From NCBI RefSeq assembly GCF_964204645.1, contig NC_134030.1, forward strand, positions 11,677,947-11,741,946: a stretch of DNA of 64,000 nt, read 5' to 3'. Shown piece by piece: positions 26,481 to 38,800 of this stretch (positions within the stretch are counted from its first letter, which is position 1; each line of letters begins with the position of its first letter). The notes beneath the pieces are model-generated. The model did not search any database. It saw nothing but the letters and a program-made list of their open reading frames with translations, and was not told the origin of the DNA. Origin of the DNA: Tubulanus polymorphus (Eukaryota > Animalia > Nemertea). A program made the translations under genes and the position numbers.

Positions 26481-27658
26481 CGAATAGCTAATGTCTATTT
26501 CAACCTGACTTGAGAGCATTCCGGGTGGCCTAGCCGGTTCCTGAACTTCGCTGAAAAAGCTGAATCACTGAAACGCTGAAACGCTGAAATAAAAACGCTG
26601 AAATTTCAGGGAATTTCCGAAAAATGCCGAAATTTTAGGGAATTCCCGAAAAACGCTGAAATCGTGCTAGGTACCAACAATACACGTTTTGAAATATTTT
26701 CCGGGCCGGTGTCCGCTGCCGAGTCCTGAACCGTGTTTTAGTCTCTACCTTCGGTTACAGAGACATGCATGGACAGTATGTGTGGAGTATACTTCTAGAG
26801 GGCCACTTGTTGGACAAATTAATTCGCTTGAAATCCGGATTTTTAATGCATACAGGCAGCATAATGCATACAGGCAGCATAATGAGGAAAACCCATTCAC
26901 TAACCGTGCAAGCCAACTTAAACACTATGCTCAATATTCCCTGCAAGACGCAAAATATCTTATTTGAACGTTCATGTATAAAACATGCAGCAACTTTTCT
27001 TTTGTCAACACGTTGATGGGCGACGGACTATGTCACTATGGTATTCTATGAAGGAGGTAAATTAAATTTGACAGCTAGTTATATAAATGATGCAGCTTTT
27101 GGACAAAAGGGATCTAACTAAATTTCTTTTTAATTCACTGTGGAATGGAATGGAATGGATTGACGCCAATGGCATGCAGTAGGCCCCTACGTATGGGTCA
27201 TACCAAAAATTCATAAAGACTAAAAATGTACAACTTTTTTGCTGACTTTTGAGGTAACTTTGAAAGCCTGTAACTCAATAAGTGTTTGGGTTATATTCAT
27301 CATGAATGTACCGCATGAAACAGAAGAACGTGCTTTTTCTAAGGGGCGTTAAATGTAATAGCCAGGAATAGCCAGAACCGTGTAATTAGCATTTATAAAC
27401 TCCTATGAATGACTTCATTTAGGCCTTCATTCACAGGCAGTTTCCCTAGCACTCAGTTCCTAATGTGAAACACAGAGTGCAGCACTAGCGTATTCCATAC
27501 ATATATGGTGGGTTACTGGCTGGGTTCCAGCTTAACACGTGGGGTTATATTTTGATCCGAGTCCGTGGGTCAACAAAAGGTTACCGACATGTGTTTTAAG
27601 ATAAATAACATATAAGCAGCAATGTTTCAGTATTCTTCTCCACACTGTAATAGTGACC

Positions 27659-28854
27659 ATGGCAAGAAAACGCAAAACAAATTCCGCTATCAAAATTATT
27701 GAATCAATATCCTTAATAGATATCTGTAAGGATGTAAAAGAGAAAATGTTGCAGACTAGACACTTAATTTTTTTTCCTCAAAGGATGGAAACTTGGGAAA
27801 AAAATGTTGAAAGAAGGAACGCTAGTGAGTGATATCATTTTTGACCTGCACAAAACATTTCAATGTTCTTATAAAATAACCCAATCCATGACGGATCCAT
27901 ATGTTAATTTCATGTTGGAGTGGAATGATAAACTTCGTCAATATTCGAGCAATTGGCCGTTTATATCTACTCCTCATGAAATGTTATGGGATCTTTTTCA
28001 AAAGGATAAAATTGAAATCGATTCAGCAGGAGCAATCATCCACAGTATCGGTGACTATGTGAGAAATTATATACAGGCCAGAATGAACATTTCTGAAGAA
28101 AGAACCGAGACGAGTATTTTGAAGCCGCAGTCAACTGCAGGACTGTATCTTGTTTCTGGTGGCTGTCTGGGACTTATGTTTTCTTTATATAAGCGTGAAC
28201 GTCGAAGGGGTAATACAGAAGCCCCGAAAAAACTTCGAGTCCTTTTGAAAATGATAATTTTGGACAAAAGCAAGTCTTCAAAATTGCCTGTTGAAGTTTG
28301 GTGCCGTGATAAAGGTGGACTTTACATATTCAAGCCAGAATTCATGGATATGGTAAAATCAATTGATACCGAAATCATGAATTGTGTAAATGTAACCGAA
28401 TTGCAAAAACATAAAAAAAGAATTATCAGGGTAAGTAAACAATGTTTTAAAATATTTTTTTATTGCTCTTAATACAAAAAATACACATCAAAATAAATTA
28501 AATGTTCATATTTTTCAGCTTACAACAGACAAAATTCTGCCAAACAAGGATCTTGAAGCAGTTTTTGTCGGACTTGTCACACAAAGTGTTGGATCTGAGG
28601 TGGCAGATGAACTGAGACTGAACATAGTTTCTGTTTGGACGGACTTTTTGCGTAAATACACTCATGCGCGCATAAATGGAATCATAAAGGGAATATACGA
28701 GAAAAAAGTAGAAAAATCTGGTAAACGCCTGAAAGGAGGATCAAGCTTAAGAGAAACGCTTTATAATCTTGGAAAGACAAGAAACCCTAAACATTCTAAA
28801 TCAACTCCTTCAACTTCTAAAAAACAATCTGTTCGTAAAGGAGATAAACGGTGA
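27659..28854 (+). CDS. Two-exon accessory gene of the P-like element (~370 aa; one frameshift near 27800); resembles a P-transposase C-terminal domain
   Basis: ATG 27659 (MARKRK); phase-0 intron 28431-28518 (gtaagt...tttttcag) joins ORFs 27804 and 28600 in frame; motifs LYLVSGG, RDKGGLYIFKP, RKYTHAR. Confidence 0.75.
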
Positions 28855-28971
28855 CATGGTTATTAATTGAATAATAATACGATTCTTCATTTGATGTATA
28901 TAAAGGTAACTAAGAAATTGGACAATACATGAACGTTTATGTTTATATATAATCTATTTTTAGTTTGTTAA

Positions 28972-31900
28972 TTATTTTTTTCTCATGAGTGGAACGTCTT
29001 GGGTATAAAGCGGTGTATCTCTGTAATAATTTCTCTTCTTTTTCTTCTGATGGCCATGGACCTCTTTTTTTAACATAACAGTTCTCCTTGCCTGTGGATA
29101 GTTCAATGACGTTAGTTTTCCACCCACGCAGTGTTTAAACTGCGAGAAGAGAGTTTCTACTGCACTGCCATTCACTGTGAGTGGGGTAATATAATATCCA
29201 GGAAATTCAGTGAGATAGTCTTTACAAAATCCAATGAACCCAAACACCATAACACGAAGTAGATCATATGTCTGAAAATATAAATAGTGTCTCCATTTCT
29301 TATAGATGCTCATTTAAAAAGATAGCCATAGGTGCTATTTCGTTGATATGTTATCTTAGTTTACCTGCCAACTAATAAATTTCTTTTGGGATGGAGAAAT
29401 CATCTGGAATTCGTCAGCAACTGAAAATAAGATAGGAACCCAAATTTGAATTAGTTAATTTCTCTATGAATTATTTCGTCTGGCAAATTTATTTTAGACA
29501 CATGTAAAATAATTTGTTATATCGGTGCATTCACTCACATTCATGGTGTAGATATTCACACCAGTCCCTGAAGTATTTATATCCTTCTGAGATGTTCAAT
29601 ATGATTGGGCTTTCCATGTCATGAATCTGGCTATTTCTTGTCATGTCATTTGGTTTTCTACTTTTCAGAAGTCCTTCTTCAAAAAGTTGGCTGCAAGCCA
29701 CCAGGTAACTTCGGGTTGCCATAACATGTTCTGATTCCAATGGGATAGGAGAATTGTCGGGATTCGCGTAACTGTAGATTCGGCAAGCACTTGCGGTTGC
29801 TATAAATAAATACAGTTCGTGAAGACTAGGTTCTGACAGTTATCTCTTAATTAAGTTTGAATTAATGTTTTTTATACCTGCATGATTTTTGCTGGTTTAA
29901 CATTTAGCTTAGTCCAGGAATCTCGTTCTATATAAGATTTGATCAATCCTGGTACCATCCGAATATGATTATCATCTCTTCTTTGAGTTTCACGATTCCA
30001 CATACTTTTTATTTCATCCCATCCGAATTCAACTCCATTCATGAAGTTTTTCGTTCCACCTGTTTGACTTGCCCACAACTGATTAATTTGATTTTTAAGC
30101 TGTAAAAAGAAACATATCAATAAAAATGAGATCCTTCAATTATACTGTAAAATACCATATTTCAACTTGGATAGAAGTGTTTGCTTACTTGATGTGATGG
30201 ACAGATGACAAAGTAAATTTTCTTTTCTGGTTCGTGGGGGTTCATCATCCAAGGTTCAACTTTATGCCGATCTTCCTGGGCATCCTTTAGACCAAAGGCA
30301 CCGTGCGGATAACCACTGAGTGTTTTTATCATCGATAGGTTGGTGCTGGCTCCATCAGTCACCACCACCCTTGTCTGCAAAGAAATTTGAAAATTAAAGA
30401 TATCTGAAGATGCTAATCAATGGGTTTCATCAAAAATTATGAATTTTTGGTTTCATTTGCAATCAACTTAAAAACTTACCCTGAATCCATACTCATAAAA
30501 GATTCTCAAGACATCATACAGACAAGCTGTCGTAAAAGCTGCATCCATTGTTGTGTGACAATTAAAATAAGGTCCAATAATATCGAAATCACTGCTTAAG
30601 TCCCTCCACAAAAACTGCAACTCATATTCAGCCGTCTCTGGTGTACATTCTCCGGATAATTCTTTGAAAATATCTTTCAAAGAAGACATTTCTGTGGCGT
30701 CCATAGCGAGCCCGTTGAGTTGTTTATTTTTACTATTCCACGCTACTTTACCGATAACTTTTACTTCATCGAGTATCAAAACTCCAGTTGAGGTTGGTGA
30801 TTTTTTGCCTTTCGATGTACACTCATTTTTCCACAAATTTTAACGGTTAAATGTGTCTTCTATATAATCATAATATGACTCCGTTCCAGGAGCCTGCAAC
30901 AGTGCAGTAGAATAGTGCTGCAGTGAACTTCGCGAGGGCAGTTTGAAAATTCCCCACTCTTGAATCGCTTCGTAGGCTGCAGGGCTTCGACAGTATATTG
31001 ACAGAGCAATTCGAAAGGTGACCATACTCCAACGGTTTCCTTTTTGTCCAGTTTCTAATTTGAAAAATTAAAATATTTTGTAAATTTTGTCTGGATTTCA
31101 CTTTTCAATTTGAATTTTGGATTAACAAATATATTGAGTTAAAAGAAGTCCAATTTTCATCTAGAATTGTGGGCTAAAGTATCCAATATTGAGAAGTATA
31201 TTGAAAATATCTAGTGGTTCAGAATTATATGAATTTTTTCATGAATTCAAAATGATAGAAATTCACTTACCATTGCGGTGCTGATCGGCTTCCCAGGTAG
31301 TTTTTATTGCTTGCAATGTGTCTTTTTCTAATTCTGCTTCCGCTAAGACAGCTTCGATATCACCAGGCTTGACGTGAGAACAAAAATCTTCCAATTCCTT
31401 ACTTTGCGTCTGTTCAAGTTCGATGGTATAGTCATTTTGAATTTTCTGTGAGGTGTTAATTAATCGACGCTTTATATTTCTAGCACTTGAACTCTTTCTC
31501 TCGATTCTCCGCTTTTTGCTTCGTGGTGTCAAATTAGTCATAGGATAGTTAGAATTTTTTTCTGAACGTCTTGCTTTAGTTTGCGGAGTAACCAATTGTT
31601 CACGCTTGTTCGTCTTTCGAAGATTGCGATAAGCATTTGAACATTCCGGACATCGAGACGTTGCTGAGGATCTTGCTTCTCGTTCTTCTACCGTGGCATT
31701 GAATCGAAGTTTGAACCATTTTTGCACTTTTTTGATATAAATGATGGCGGAATCTTTCTCTCGATAACGAACGACGGAATATACTTGATTGACGAACAAA
31801 CGCTGTCAAATTCCGGTCTGGATATTCCTGTGCAGAATACATATTCACTAGACATCCGACCAAGCATATCGTCGATTACATTCCAATCTATTCCCGTGTC

Positions 31901-32249
31901 CGATAGATATGATGTTTCGAATAATAATTCATCGCATAAGTAGTGTTTCAGAACACCAGATGTGAATATTAATATCTTCGACACGGTTGCTGGTCCTCCC
32001 GTAGTGAATCCCACATCACATATTCCTCGAGTAATCTCGAGAAAAATATCTCCAGAGCAACTTAAAAATCGTATTTGTAATAACGCAAATAGATCGTGAA
32101 TATAGTTAACTATTTCTGACAATTCCGATGGACCAGCATTAAGAGCAATTTTGCTACTACCCGTTTGAGTAGTTTTATGGTCAGTTTCTTTAGAAAGTAA
32201 TACTGGAACATAAATAACGGCGGGTTGCGCTGGAAAAAAATGTAGTCAT
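28972..32249 (-). pseudogene. Multi-exon P-element/THAP9-type transposase with a few frameshifts
   Basis: HTH NRWSMVTFRIALSIYCRSPAAY...LPSRSSL; catalytic DEVKV and TDGASTN; CPSHQLKN; DSWTKLNVKPA; FISWQ/T; NGSAVETLFSQFK; GT-AG introns at about 31270-31055, 30479-30377, 30188-30100, 29877-29801, 29537-29422 and 29365-29273. Confidence 0.9.
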
Positions 32250-35200
32250 CTTTTCAGCTTTACTTGTTGCAATTGGAAGACATTATATGAATGCGGCTTT
32301 ATAAATGTTTTGAGTTGATCAGTTTGATGGTTTCTAGGGGTATGAACACTGATATTAGTCACGGTAATTAAAAAGAGCAACTGCTATGTTTAAACCCGTG
32401 CACACAGTGATGCATGGCAACTGGTAAAACCATGAACAACTATCTTTTTCGTAGTCATACAAATTTACTTGAAAATCCATCTACTAAGATGTAATAAGTT
32501 CAATTTTTTATTCAAAGGTACTTATGAGTGGTTATGGCTTAAAACTCCCATTCATATTGCTTTTCTATATTACGGGTTGTCTAAGTCGTTATTCGAAAAA
32601 CATCAAATGAAAAAAGCCCGTGTAATTTACCTATCTGAGAAAAAACTTGTAAAACTCATTTGTTCTCGTCGGTTTAGCAATTTTAAAGGATTCGAGGTAG
32701 AGAATCGTATATATTTTCACTATCTCTATAAAATACCAAATCAAAAGAAGTTGTTTAGCCTAGTTGTTAAGTCTTTATTCGTTCCACTAATGGGTGAAAT
32801 AATGGATAAATACCACAGTAACTGAATATAAGGTCATTTTTAGGAATTAGGCTTTATACGTTTTCCGATTCGAAGTTTTTCATTGGGAATTTTTCGAATA
32901 TATACCGTGTGCAATTATGTAATTTCTCTAACTTTTTGTTATGCATTAGTAGACCATAGAGAAAACTCATAATTATACGCAAATATAATTGCATCAATCG
33001 AGATATTTCATAAAGATTCTTTGCTCCGGATACAACAAACGTGGCTTCAACCATTTAACTTAGATATTCTGACCATTCAAGATATCACTCAAGTCACACA
33101 GATTTTCCAGGTACTATAAGCTCTACAAGCTTATAGTGAGTTTACTACAGTTTTCTAAGTATCATTTGTTTATATAAACATACGCTGTTTAAATGTCTGG
33201 GTCAGCAAACACAAATAGTAACACACTCGTGTACAGTCAGACCACATGTGGTTAGGGACAGTACTGTTGTTGTGCTATGCTAATGACTTACTTATATGCC
33301 AATATTCGATTGTGGTGCCATCTGGTTACTACAGGAGTACCCAGTAAAATGCTTGTGAGGCTATGAAAATCCATGAAAAAGAAGGGAGATCTTTCGCCAT
33401 CTAGTGAGAAAGTGTGCTACTTCTCATAGTTAAGCAGCTATGATCTATATAGGAGAGATTCCACTGAGTCAAACGATACCAACATTGTATTTTTAAGTTG
33501 AATAGTAAATCTGTCATAGAATCTCAAACAAAGGGAAAATAACCCATTTTACGAGTTGTACATTTTTAGTCTTTATGAATTTTTGGTCATACTGATTAGC
33601 GTCAACCAATTAATCTAAATCGGGCTAACCATTCAACAACTGTGAATAATTTATTTGCTGTGGCGTGATAATAATTAGTTTTTTTGAAGAAATGACATAC
33701 CAACTGTTAGAAAAATGTACCGATTCTTATTTTTAGACTACTACTGAATCTATAAAAGGAGGAGTCATAGACAAAGTTGATTTGCTTAGCTGGTGACACT
33801 TCTTGTCAAGTACATCATCTCAAGTACTGGGTGTTTTGTAAGTTTAATTTCAGTATTTATTTACTAAGTGCTGTTCTCTCGGACCTCAGTGCTTTCAAAC
33901 TAGGCCCACCCCATAGGCTATATAGTCCAGGGTGCATTAGCCACTATTCTTTTATATCCGACTAAAATGCACCTTTTTCTATTTTTAGATTCAGGCTTAG
34001 AATGTGCAAATTTTTTGAGATACTGAGAAATCAGATGGCACCAGTAAACTTCAACTGCGAAATTTGCAGCAGGATAGCTGAACGACACAATTTTTAAAAA
34101 TAAAATGGCTATTCGAATGCTATTTCAATAATAACTTGATTCAACCTGAGAGAAGTAAGTCAATTGCGGATGTACAGTACACCCACTTTTCTTCCCTGTT
34201 TCCTGGTACCAGATTTTTAGTCTTAAGCTAAGCGATATTCTAAGGTATACTAGTGGATTTCATTAGAATATGAAGCAATGGAACCAGAATTCTAGCCAGA
34301 GTTAAGCGAACTATTGATTCTGATATAATGTAAGAACTGATTTCCTTTGTATACTCTTGCAGAATGTGTTATGTTTTATTTCAAGCTGTTAAATAATATA
34401 GTTAGACAAATGTCCAATTATTGGATCTTTCTTGTTGACTCGTTTAATTTTGTGAGTTAAGAGTTCCAGTCAATCCACAATGTGCAGTGCCTAGCCTTCA
34501 TCTACACTAAAGCCAAGCCTGTGTATGGGAAAAAAATATCGTTCGACTCCTATAGGCCAGACACATCAAAGCATGCAATACATTGCAGATAGTAGTCTCC
34601 GGCAAGTCGAAAGAGAAAGTGAACCAGGTTTTACCCCGTACCCTACCCGGGAACAAAGACACTTAAAGATTCCTTCCTCCTTGTAGAAATTGTAGAAATA
34701 TGGCACCCAATTGTAGCAATGCTAAGTACAGTATACTATGACGGTTGAACCTTTCTTAACGAATTTCAATGACACCGAAAATAGAATCAAAATAATCATT
34801 AGTTCCATGCTAGCACTTAATTTGGGTTATCAGGTTCAGCCTAACTGTACTTTCATTCAGCTACTACTTGTATGAGACTTGGCAATGATAAGTTGCAAGA
34901 AATCACCAAACATAAGAAAAAATATTGTGAATTAATATTACTGTGATTAAGAATTTATTCAAATGAAGTGATAACTTCATTGTTAGATCGTACCGGTATA
35001 TGCACATAAAACTATGGCAAAAAACACATCTAACAATCCACGCAATCCGCAATCGATCAAGTCGATCATGACGACGACCTTAAGGCATGTCTCTGTAACC
35101 GAAGGTAGAGCATAAAACACGGTTCAGGACTCGTCAGCGGACACCGGCCCGGAAAAAATTTCAAAACGTGTATTGTCGGTACCTAGCACGATTTCAGCGT

Positions 35201-35888
35201 TTTTCGGGAATTCCCTGAAATTTCGGCGTTTTTTCGGAAATTCCCTGAAATTTCAGCGTTTTTATTTCAGCTTTTCAGTGTTTCAGCTTTTTCAGCGAAG
35301 TTCAGGAACCGGTGGCCTAGCTCGCTTATTTTTGGTAGTACATACCTGATAAAGGTCTTAGTAGGACCAGAAAGGACTAGCAGTCGACCTAAATCATCAC
35401 TTTTTAATCCATTTGAAACTGTATTGAAGGATATCCAGGCCACCTGACAATGCTCTCAAGCCACCTGACAATGCTCTCAAGCCACTTGGCTTGAGAGCAT
35501 TGTCAGGTTACTACGTTTGATAGTACCTGAGGTCTTATTAGGTTTCTTAGGCTGAAGTTAGGTATGAAGGTTTGGAAATATATTGTTAAAATGTCAAATC
35601 ATGGAGTCGCTTTCTTTTATTTAACCCCTTGCAATGAATCCTTCAATACGAAAAAAATTGCCAGTCTTTTCTAGTCCTAATAAGACTTTGTCAGGTATGT
35701 ACCTCCAAAACTGACTGAGCTTGGCCACCTGATGTGCTCTAAAGCTAAGTTGAAATAGATATTAACGTGGGCGGCACCAGGAATGTTCTACGGGAGGGGC
35801 GGGGGGTCGAGTACGTAATATTTAACTAAAAGTTTCCGTAGGGTGGAGCCCGCTCAGGTGCGGAACGCATACAAATATCTGCCAAATT

Positions 35889-38800
35889 ATGTCTTGGAGA
35901 TGCGTTCTGACGCAATCTACTAGGCAGACCGAGTCAGCTCCTGTCTACGATGATGATCCGTTTTGCCTTGACTCAATCGAAGTAGAAGTGATTGACGCCG
36001 AAATAAATGTGACAGATGATATCGAAAGTGAAAGTGAATCGACAAAACCGTGGATCGTTCCTGTTACCGTTAACAACACGGTCATTCCGATGAAGCTCGA
36101 TACTGGAAGCGACGTCAACATCATCAGCATTCTTGACTTCAAGAAGCTGAGATCTGCAGCGAAACTGAATGACAGTAGCGTCAAATTAATCGCGTACAAC
36201 GGAGGACAAATCCCGGCCAAAGGAAGGGCGATATTATCAGTTAGAGTCAACGGATTGACACAGAACTCGCTCTTCATTATCTGTCAGAACGATGCCGTTC
36301 CGATTCTTGGCAGGAAAGCGTGCGAACAATTCGGCTTGATTAAGAGGATTTTCGCGATCGCTGGAACACCGTTAGACTATAAACATTACTTCGAGGAGTA
36401 TGCAGACGTATTTACAGGACTAGGATGTCTACCTGGAAAAGTCCACATCGAGGTTCGTGACGACATCACGCCTGTTGTCGAACCTTGTCGCAAAGTGCCA
36501 TTCGGACTAGAGGAAAACCGAACTAGAACGCCTGGAATCGATAAATGTTATATCGTGAAAGTGGACGAGCCCACCGAATGGGTTAATTCACTCGTTATCG
36601 TCAACAAACAGGATGGCAACATTCGCTTGTACCTGGATCCGAGATATCTCAACCGCGCAGTGAAACGCGAACACTTCAAACTGCCTACGCGTGAAGAAAT
36701 CTGCAAAGTTTGCAGGCAGTAGATACTTTTCGAAGCTAGATGCGCGTAGTGGTTACTGGCAACTGCAACTTGACACAGCCAGTTCATACCTTTGTACATT
36801 TAACACTCCATGTGGTAGATATCGTTACTTGAGGCTACCCTTTGGTATTTCTTGTGCTAGCGAAATTTTCCAAAGAAAAATGTATCAGTTATTTGAACAT
36901 GTTCAAGGTGTACGTAGAAGTCTCAATGGATGATATTGCAGTACATGCAAACACAAAGGCAGAACATGATAGCCATTTGAGACATGTATTTCAGATAGCA
37001 CGTGAAAATGGTTTAAAGTTTAACATTGACAAATGTTTGTTGGTGTAGATGAAATCACATTCATAGGTGATAGGTACACTGCAGAAGGCCTTAAGCCTGA
37101 TAGCAAGAAAGTTGAAGTAATCACAAAGATGGCTCGCCCAGTGAATCGCACTGAACTACAGAGTTTTTTAGGCATGATAAATAATCTGGCCAGATTCGTT
37201 CCAGATTTATCATCTAGGTCAGCTCCACTTAGCTCCTTGCTAGACAAACGTGTTCACTGGAAATGGGAACACGAGCAAGAAAAAGCTTGGCTTGAACTCA
37301 AGACATTGGTTACTAGGCAACCAGTCTTACAGTATTATGATGTTTAAACAAGCATACCAAAGTGTCAACACATGCTAGTCAAAGTGGACTAGGTGCTGTA
37401 TTGTTACAATGTGACTCACTGGATGAGGATAACTGGTTACCTGTAGCATTTGCATCTAGGGCCATGTCTGAATGTGAACAGAGATGTTCAAATAGAAAAG
37501 GAAGCTCTTGGTATAGCATTTGGTTGTGAAAGATTTCATCAATATTTGTATGGTAGAAGATTTGAGGTTGAAACAGACCACAAACCGTTGATTGCTATAT
37601 TCAAGAAAAGTCTCAACGACTGCCCAGCTAGGTTACAACGGTTAAGTGATTACAGAAGTATGATCTTGAGTTGAAGTTTACACCTGGTAAATTCATGTAT
37701 ACTGCTGATGCCCTTAGTCACAATTACATGTCACACAATGGTTACCGTGAATTGGAATTGCATGTTGATGCACAGGTAGACTTACTTATGAAGTCTGTTC
37801 CCGTGTCAGACAGAAAACTGAAAGAAATCCGGGCTGACACGGACAAGGATGATACCATGTGTAAACTTCGTCAAACCATTTTTAATGGTTGGCCATATGA
37901 AAGGTCTTGTTGTCCCATAGAATTACTTCCATTTTGGAATGTAAGAGGTGAACTGTCAGTAGTTGATGCTGTGATTTGTAAAGGTACTCGTATTGTCATT
38001 CCTAGTAGTCTGAGAAAAGACATCCTTGACCAAATACATAAAGGTCATCAAGGTGAAGCAAAGTGTAAACGAAGGGCTAGGTGTTCAGTGTACTGGCCAT
38101 TGATAAACCAAGATGTAGCAAACATGGTAAAACTATGTGATACTTGTCTCACATACCGGGATGCACGGCAAAATGAACCCTTGGCACCCCATGAGATACC
38201 TGAGATAGTCCCTGGCAGAAAGTAGCCTCTGATTTGTGTACATGTGAAAACAAAGAATATCTCATTGTGGTTGATTGTTACTCATGTTACCCCGAAGCTG
38301 TACACATTCGAGACAAAACTAGTAAGTCGGTTATAAATGGTATGAAAGGTCTATTTTCTAGGCATGGTATACCCCAGAAGGTATGACAATGGTCCATGTT
38401 GCAGTTCTGGTGAGTTTTCTCAGTTTGCAGTTGAATGGGATTTTGTTCATAACACGTCCAGCCCAGGACATCCACGTTCAAATGGGCAGGCAGAGAAAAC
38501 AGTTCAGATTGTAAAGAACATACTAAGAAAATGTGCTCATTGTGGTCAGGATCCTAGGTTAGGATTACTTGCTTATAGAACAACACCAGTGATAGATGAT
38601 TTTTCCCCAGCTGAACTGTTAATGGGAAGAAAACTGAGGTCAAACTTACCCATAACACAGGATCAGTTAAAACCTGATAATAGTAAAGAAGTTGTTAAAT
38701 GGAAGAATCACAAAAGAAAACTCAGAAACTTTAATGATAAAGGTACAAGGTCATTGTGTTCCCTAAAACAAGGTGATACTGTTAGAATTAGAGATAGTAA

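Follow-up and report, generated by a model that had tools for sequence, protein, structure and literature searches.

Evidence for a two-gene P-superfamily transposon in the nemertean Tubulanus polymorphus with a separately encoded, predicted C-terminal module

A 64,000-nucleotide stretch of the genome of the nemertean Tubulanus polymorphus (NCBI RefSeq assembly GCF_964204645.1, contig NC_134030.1, positions 11,677,947 to 11,741,946, forward strand; hereafter the window, to which unlabelled positions refer) was found to carry a DNA transposon with two convergent genes, a minus-strand transposase and a plus-strand partner. The element is probably a low-copy, recently active transposon of the P superfamily, in which the partner would supply the C-terminal module of the transposase in trans. 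A preliminary description of the sequence had proposed such a split, two-subunit P transposase, and the evidence assembled below supports that reading, under which the two products would assemble with one another. The P element is the textbook example of a single-gene transposon, and the structure of its C-terminal domain comes from one cryogenic electron microscopy study. The present element would add a two-subunit architecture to the P superfamily.

Early termination of the transposase

The minus-strand gene appears, from its sequence, to encode a divergent P-superfamily transposase. Read along its exons (Table 1), the protein contains LILDEV with the first catalytic D, VVTDGASTN with the second, CPSHQ spliced to LKNQINQLW, then KLNVKPAKIMQ and finally the catalytic-E motif SAVETLFSQFKHCVGG (SAVETLFSQFK..GG), the second D and the CxxH motif both being held by exon 3. 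Contigs from sequencing run X4 define three introns with CT..AC ends on the minus strand, at 29800-29877, 30100-30188 and 30375-30479. The profile of the TNP-like RNase H N-terminal domain (PF21787) matched the exons of the window at consecutive profile positions with 18.3 and 12.8 bits, below its cut-off. Exons were searched singly, and the longer queries were natural uninterrupted open reading frames (ORFs; L014:1378-2568 and L025:11368-13404). On unbroken orthologous ORFs of other assemblies the same profile exceeded its cut-off, with 29.3 bits at locus L023 and 24.9 bits on a 678-amino-acid (aa) ORF at locus L025, and it is carried by 37 of 40 relatives of the transposase.

Placement in the P superfamily is favoured by the target-site duplication (TSD) of 7 bp, which fits, and also by the terminal inverted repeats (TIRs) of 32 bp. 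Three other superfamilies were considered and rejected. hAT elements are known for a BED finger, a hAT C-terminal dimerisation domain and an 8-bp TSD, and Kolobok elements for a TTAA TSD; here, neither the BED finger nor the hAT dimerisation domain was matched by Pfam, and the TSD is 7 bp long rather than 8 and is not TTAA. Dada elements have no TIRs, target small-RNA genes and generate a TSD of 6-7 bp (PMC3706591), whereas the present element possesses 32-bp perfect TIRs and is inserted in another transposable element.

The transposase stops soon after its catalytic E. The preliminary description had put this distance at about 60 aa, and it was measured as exactly 60 aa from the E to the end of the last exon at 28972-28974. 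No further exon is joined on downstream, because an X4 contig (28952-29267) runs through the stop codon without any joint. Furthermore, early termination characterizes the whole lineage. Among relatives, 25 sequences that span the E motif and a natural C-terminus terminate 53-61 aa beyond the E; Sycon ciliatum is one of them, and many have a full length of 740-930 aa. The same early stop recurs in diverged Tubulanus families, in three ENA assemblies and in Priapulus (52-72 aa). An own C-terminal domain was found in none of more than 20 full-length relatives. The last ~25 residues form a basic terminal peptide common to this lineage across phyla, HSGK-x-(D/Y)YR(D/N)-x-PL...L.RKK (28975-29040, minus strand, in the window; relatives P0121-P0155), represented in the last exon of the window by the conserved tail NYYRDTPLY...RKK. 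Judging from its sequence, the peptide could be a docking or nuclear-import motif.

A comparator that keeps the domain in cis was found in the same genome. The canonical THAP9-like gene or element L041 (G000:C7:12731500-12741400, minus strand) carries PF12017, PF21787, PF21788 and PF21789, together with an AVPNIF THAP end. Its frame continues for 130 aa beyond the E into ...VYVTGYMRRF..., and a further ORF on the same strand contains ...FGGLLMPTKNMITFLSTCEDVF... and ...YIQMRIHYALKFFNRV...KKQNHKMLK. After the E, the order is thus YVTGYM, GGLLMP and a basic helix, all on one strand, which is the cis state and bears out the motif order that had been attributed to the C-terminal domain of P and THAP9 transposases. 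The frames of L041 are interrupted between 7426 and 7100.

The partner gene and its predicted fold

The plus-strand gene has two exons, and splicing restores its frame as had been suggested from the sequence: an X4 contig joins 28430 to 28519 in frame, giving a protein of ~368 aa. Its stop codon lies 117 bp from that of the transposase, in agreement with the earlier estimate of about 120 bp. In the reference copy of the element, L014, the partner ORF is open from MARKRK to GDKR over 397 aa, since L014 lacks one T within the stretch that is intronic in the other copies. A weak X4 joint (27825-28004, depth 4, side 26, GT..AG) skips 180 nt in partner exon 1; it may represent an alternative in-frame intron or derive from another copy. 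Both genes are transcribed and spliced, in opposite directions: in X4 contigs the partner has one joint of the GT..AG type, and the transposase has three with CT..AC ends. The transcripts are convergent, since the partner contigs reach to 28922 and those of the transposase begin at 28952.

Exhaustive HMMER searching gathered partner homologues in 72 representative clusters (54-486 aa), none of them fused to a transposase, and Pfam scans of the partner and its homologues matched no family. The family is characterized by the blocks H..FF..R..W, GL.RL.GGALG.MF, LPV....RDRGGLY....F.P and HGK...KV, followed in exon 2 by ..E..RK..N.RI.EF and G..LRD.L, and it has no conserved cysteines. The T. polymorphus protein XP_074651600.1 is 96% identical to the partner.

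The link to the missing domain comes from structure prediction. An AlphaFold2 model based on a 73-sequence alignment is all-helical with a mean predicted local distance difference test (pLDDT) score of 84. The folded sequence includes ~29 residues encoded by the intron; these account for the low-confidence stretch 258-274, and low confidence is restricted to this piece and the basic tail. In an exhaustive VIA-align search of 48,161 PDB chains, the best match was 6p5a_B, which comprises residues 617-734 of the Drosophila P transposase, i.e., its C-terminal domain (Z 8.7, root-mean-square deviation 3.1 Å, 115 of 118 residues aligned, partner residues 155-352). Among ESM Atlas cluster representatives, the first row was a THAP9 C-terminal domain cluster (PF22824; template-modelling (TM) score 0.53, query residues 154-355), the second a P-transposase cluster with PF21788, PF21789 and PF22824, and the third a full-length THAP9-like cluster. 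The structural likeness to the P C-terminal domain that the preliminary description had anticipated was therefore recovered. This match carries weight because both libraries are headed by the same family, aligned to the same part of the partner, and because the neighbouring transposase lacks exactly that domain. Based on these models, the partner and the cis C-terminal domain probably share a common origin.

A second partner family reproduces the match. Locus L023 encodes a more canonical P-like transposase (PF21787 at 1.6e-29, PF21789 at 6e-9) that ends 71 aa beyond the E and, convergent with it, a second ORF reading ALRYAAGYVP...NRGGLF.VSDEVY.FF...LWLTIRGFS...LRKGLKRK. This family, termed family B, shows homology to the first one (hhalign 92%, E 5e-7, 267 columns). 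Its model (pLDDT 65) matched 6p5a_B over the equivalent region at rank 17, with Z 6.0 over all 115 residues, and, among the matches listed, none confined to that region outscored 6p5a_B. In T. polymorphus, eight of ten loci with PF21789 have a convergent family-B partner within 1.5 kb, six of them clear and two fragmentary (L032 and L034-L040, on G000 contigs C1, C2, C3, C4, C5 and C12), and the family-B-linked transposases of this genome stop ~60 aa after the E. The split layout is accordingly not confined to one odd lineage, because these partners occur at eight of the ten PF21789 loci.

Searches that complement the structural comparison were silent. A protein-language-model look-up returned nothing for the partner, and scanning the genome of the worm with PF12596 and PF22824 yielded either no match or one of 20.8 bits, under the cut-off. 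The sole trace of the domain at the sequence level, a precomputed PF22824.3 label for the family-B member P0118, was not reproduced by the local PF22824.1 model.

Several results weigh against the proposal that the partner provides the C-terminal module, and some of them would suit a different explanation, namely that the partner is a true accessory gene (a regulator, a repressor, or a DNA-binding or chromatin-targeting factor) without descent from the C-terminal domain, the likeness being due to convergence or chance. No search yielded significant sequence similarity. PF12596 and PF22824 were not matched in the partner by local scans; profile and sequence searches of PDB sequences with the partner found no match, the Drosophila protein included; and hhalign of the partner against the cis domain of L041 aligned the GGL motif with a probability of 2.6%. 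Foldseek of the partner model against the PDB likewise gave no match. A Z of 8.7 is reachable by chance among helical proteins and, taken alone, lies in a grey zone; together with a TM score of 0.53, it is moderate for an all-helical protein. In addition, the N-terminal ~150 aa form an extra domain that has no counterpart in the resolved Drosophila domain and matches generic helical bundles only. On the side of the transposase, neither PF21788 (the GTP-binding insertion domain) nor PF21789 (the RNase H C-terminal motif) was detected at E<=1 on the exons of the window or of L014, their motifs being recognizable by eye only, and Pfam found no THAP domain on the 339-aa first exon, where a C...CxxC motif is present but unclassified. 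As for expression, run X4, whose run type is unrecorded, was taken as RNA on the strength of its spliced contigs, and these contigs assign expression to the family, not to an individual genomic copy. Finally, the physical assembly of transposase and partner is a step that we infer.

An unrelated accessory gene is nevertheless unlikely. P and THAP9 C-terminal domains come first in two independent libraries over the same residues, the match is reproduced by a second, homologous family, and the linked transposases are without exactly that domain. Moreover, the blocks Y-x-x-G-G/Y, GGL..P and the basic helix stand in the same order in the cis copy of the same genome.

Linkage across genomes and a working model

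At every locus reached through the partner with enough flanking sequence, the partner lies tail-to-tail with a transposase of this lineage. Convergent pairs are present in L014, L013, L019, L020, L016+L021, L018, L023, L024, L025, L026, L027 from Priapulus, and L028 and L029 from Sycon. The layout is shared by three diverged Tubulanus families (L020, L016+L021 and L018) and by the ENA assemblies ERZ25072293 (at two places), ERZ25059891 and ERZ25069764. Hence, partner homologues proved to be linked to P transposases in Tubulanus, Priapulus caudatus, Sycon ciliatum and three ENA assemblies. When Sycon ciliatum was approached through the transposase, both places examined had an unannotated ORF of 418-435 aa that matched the partner profile at E ~1e-68; at the Dysidea avara locus L030, also reached via the transposase, no partner was present within 6 kb.

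These data bear on two further explanations. One is a local accident: either a single-gene P element had its 3' end inverted in this copy, or the assembly is in error. Such an event might be suspected from the decay and nesting of the window copy and from the rearranged copies on contig C1, but the layout is identical in every copy, in every diverged family examined and in five other assemblies, and the partner is complete with a start codon, an intron and a stop codon of its own. The conserved layout rules out an inversion or artefact in this copy, leaving the idea next to no credibility. The other explanation is that the transposase works unaided, with the second ORF as a passenger, or a captured gene, inside the TIRs. 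The partner evolves faster between Tubulanus families (39-54% identity, compared with 79-87% for transposase exons 2 and 6), which is compatible with a passenger. However, linkage, order and orientation are kept down to ~20% partner identity between sponge, priapulid and nemertean, the ORFs are open in diverged copies, and both genes are spliced and expressed; such wide retention is unexpected for a passenger, and this explanation is considered quite improbable.

One locus departs from the simple arrangement. In Priapulus caudatus L027 (KQ719092.1, 2313-4269 and 7149-7439), the final partner coding piece lies ~3 kb further on, inside the transposase region of the opposite strand, where it falls between the matches to transposase exons 1 and 2. 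The NCBI model XP_014679845.1 splices across the entire Priapulus transposase. The arrangement reflects either interleaved antisense genes or a rearrangement.

In the favoured reading, that of a two-subunit P transposase, gene 1, with at least six exons on the minus strand, would provide the DNA-binding part, the RNase H-like catalytic part and the insertion domain. Gene 2, with two exons on the plus strand, would encode a helical protein in which residues ~154-355 adopt the C-terminal-domain fold, preceded by an N-terminal helical domain of ~150 aa and followed by a basic tail. Residues ~154-355 and the basic tail would take the role that the cis domain plays elsewhere, and the terminal peptide of the transposase might, speculatively, serve as the docking site. 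Both gene products would then be needed for movement. In the strand-transfer complex of Drosophila, a flexible, disordered linker tethers the C-terminal domain to the RNase H domain. The C-terminal domain is lodged between one subunit's RNase H domain and the GTP-binding insertion domain (GBD) of its counterpart, touches transposon DNA as well as target DNA, and finishes with a basic segment directed toward the target (PMC7776569). Supply in trans is plausible because the domain, loosely tethered as it is, acts between subunits even when encoded in cis. The 66-kDa P-element repressor, produced by IVS3 retention, is a P transposase without the C-terminal part, whose presence decides activity (PMC7776569). 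The repressor differs in that it is truncated by alternative splicing of one gene and loses part of the catalytic region, whereas in Tubulanus the missing part would come from a second gene.

How the split arose is a separate matter, and either fission or fusion could have been its direction. Two-subunit P transposases might be an old, widespread state from which the Drosophila P element and THAP9 derive as fusions, since two homologous partner families occur in sponges, priapulids and nemerteans and partners lie beside most P-like elements of this genome. Alternatively, the split might be a selected regulatory device that makes movement depend on co-expression. These are tentative suggestions, less likely than the basic two-gene reading.

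Compared with known systems, the Tubulanus element shares with the P element and THAP9 a TNP-like RNase H domain split by an insertion domain, a helix-turn-helix-like (HTH-like) motif before the first D, the [C/D]xxH-LLKN motif, an E located in an S-x-x-E-x-x-F-S..GG helix, TSDs of 7-8 bp, short TIRs and a helical C-terminal fold present in the system. It differs in that the C-terminal domain of P and THAP9 belongs to the same polypeptide, whereas the candidate counterpart here is a separate convergent gene with an extra N-terminal domain of ~150 aa. Furthermore, the Tubulanus lineage has CxxH where P and THAP9 have DxxH, and shows no detectable THAP, PF21788 or PF21789.

Two convergent genes inside TIRs are also a feature of ProtoRAG and of the Transib-derived RAG1-RAG2 pair, in which a catalytic DDE subunit acts with an obligatory partner. 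RAG2, a protein with kelch repeats and a PHD, is not known to derive from a RAG1 domain, and its system generates a 5-bp TSD. The tail-to-tail gene pair within TIRs is therefore alike, while superfamily, fold and TSD differ. In PIF/Harbinger elements and Kolobok Kol0, which are cut-and-paste transposons of eukaryotes, the TIRs likewise enclose a second gene, the Harbinger partner being a Myb/SANT DNA-binding protein. KolX, part of a two-gene layout that the preliminary description had likened to the present one, is a Cys-rich protein with the P2X7 cytoplasmic 'ballast' fold, seven conserved Cys and two Zn (PMC9587614). The Tubulanus partner is unlike it: identity with KolX or the Harbinger Myb protein is ruled out by the few, nonconserved cysteines and the lack of any such Pfam or fold match, and the partner resembles, rather, a module found in cis in related transposases. 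A published two-gene P element was not found in the literature, beyond standard P/THAP9 and Kolobok accessory-protein work, Repbase reports lying outside the search.

Altogether, the element offers a natural split system in which the C-terminal domain could be omitted, titrated or swapped, and a parallel to the RAG1/RAG2 gene pair. It also explains several dozen 'uncharacterized' animal proteins, such as XP_074651600.1 and XP_014679845.1. For genome annotation, second ORFs of this kind are transposon genes and should not be called host genes.

Nested anatomy of the locus and state of the window copy

The preliminary description took 26534-35312 as one unit bounded by TIRs and a TSD. The TIRs of ~235 bp (26534-26768 and 35085-35312) and the TSD are real; what did not hold is that they bound the two genes, the locus being a nest of elements (Table 1). 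The outer element is a non-coding, high-copy element of 2.4 kb, unrelated to the two-gene transposon, with at least 40 copies scored out of 458 candidates in the genome (85-97% identity, most 92-97%). An uninterrupted copy in L016, in which window position 27203 is joined directly to 33585, represents the empty site, and the final 7 bp of the outer left arm are the TSD of the inner element. The outer TIRs were ruled out as unit boundaries, given that other copies of the two-gene transposon share 27204-33585 alone and that the outer element of L016 is free of the insert. The inner, two-gene element is delimited by perfect 32-bp TIRs with the sequence CAAAAATTCATAAAGACTAAAAATGTACAACT.

Table 1. 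Features of the nested locus and of the two genes of the inner transposon (window positions)
Feature	Position	Strand	Basis or remark
Outer-element TSD TGGCCTAG, 8 bp	26526-26533 and 35313-35320		identical 8 bp on both sides
Outer non-autonomous element, left arm (TIR 26534-26768)	26534-27203		uninterrupted L016 copy; outside the two-gene transposon
Inner TSD GTCATAC, 7 bp	27197-27203 and 33586-33592		both sides of the inner element
Inner two-gene P-like DNA transposon, 6,382 bp	27204-33585		shared extent among gene-bearing copies
Inner left TIR, 32 bp	27204-27235	+	100% complementary to right TIR
Partner exon 1 (MARKRK... to ...KKRIIR)	27659-28430	+	ORF, read consensus
Partner intron (GTAAGT...TTTTCAG), 88 nt	28431-28518	+	X4 joint, GT..AG, frame arithmetic
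Partner exon 2 (LTTDKILPNK... to GDKR)	28519-28854	+	stop TGA 28852-28854; RKYTHARING helix and basic tail
Spacer between convergent stop codons, 117 bp	28855-28971		ORF ends
Last transposase exon	28972-29313	-	ORF limits, acceptor unmapped; catalytic E in SAVETLFSQFK; stop TAA 28972-28974
Transposase exon 5	29534-29799	-	upper end from RNA joint, lower end ORF limit
Transposase exon 4 (LKNQINQLW...KLNVKPAKIMQ), insertion-domain part	29878-30099	-	joints 29799>29878 and 30099>30189, CT..AC
Transposase exon 3 (TRVVVTDGASTN...FVICPSHQ)	30189-30374	-	X4 joints; PF21787 positions 113-136
Transposase exon 2	30480-31067	-	upper end is ORF limit; GNRWS...SPAAYEAI...LPSRSSL HTH-like motif, first catalytic D (LILDEV)
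Transposase N-terminal exon	31266-32249	-	ORF limits; probable ATG 32247-32249 by comparison with L014
Inner right TIR, 32 bp	33554-33585	-	perfect pair with left TIR
Outer non-autonomous element, right arm (TIR 35085-35312)	33586-35312		comparison with other copies

The two-gene family comprises two full-length copies and ~8 partial or rearranged ones in this genome, 97-99% identical to each other, and is thus low-copy; partial copies of the inner element lie on contigs C5, C8, C1 and C4. Recent activity is indicated because the copies are so similar to one another. The reference copy L014 (C4:2936922-2943295) is 99.2% identical to the window copy end to end across 6,382 bp, and the 7-bp TSD of the C4 copy, CTACGAT, is unlike the GTCATAC of the window. 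On contig C1 (G000:C1:15205000-15287000), rearranged and partly inverted fragments of the same transposon are clustered in ~80 kb, which suggests a local duplication or an aborted transposition.

The window copy itself is dead and decayed. Its defects were judged against L014 or other copies and against the read consensus of all four runs. The partner ORF from 27659 is frameshifted by an extra A at 27798, a base omitted in all four runs, and so is not intact in this copy; the ORF is intact in L014. In the transposase, two bases are missing, a G after position 29778 and a T after position 31718, the frame is shifted just past the probable start codon by a surplus A at 32234, and 30840-30842 reads TAA where other copies have TAT. 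The total amounts to four frameshifts and one nonsense codon, while L014 keeps all exons of both genes open.

The surroundings of the transposon add some minor observations. The ~235-bp TIRs of the outer element are composed of short GCTGAAA-like repeats, and a TIR-only version of this element, ~315 bp long, is present at L016 3298-3612. The outer element is in turn inserted in a third short inverted-repeat element, similar to miniature inverted-repeat transposable elements, with arms at 26489-26534 / 35719-35764 and 35311-35354 / 35686-35729, resulting in a three-level nest. Just downstream of the nest, a retroelement pol is indicated by a plus-strand ORF of 277 aa (35889-36722) that contains an aspartic protease motif of the retroviral type (KLDTGSDVNII) followed by the first part of a reverse transcriptase.

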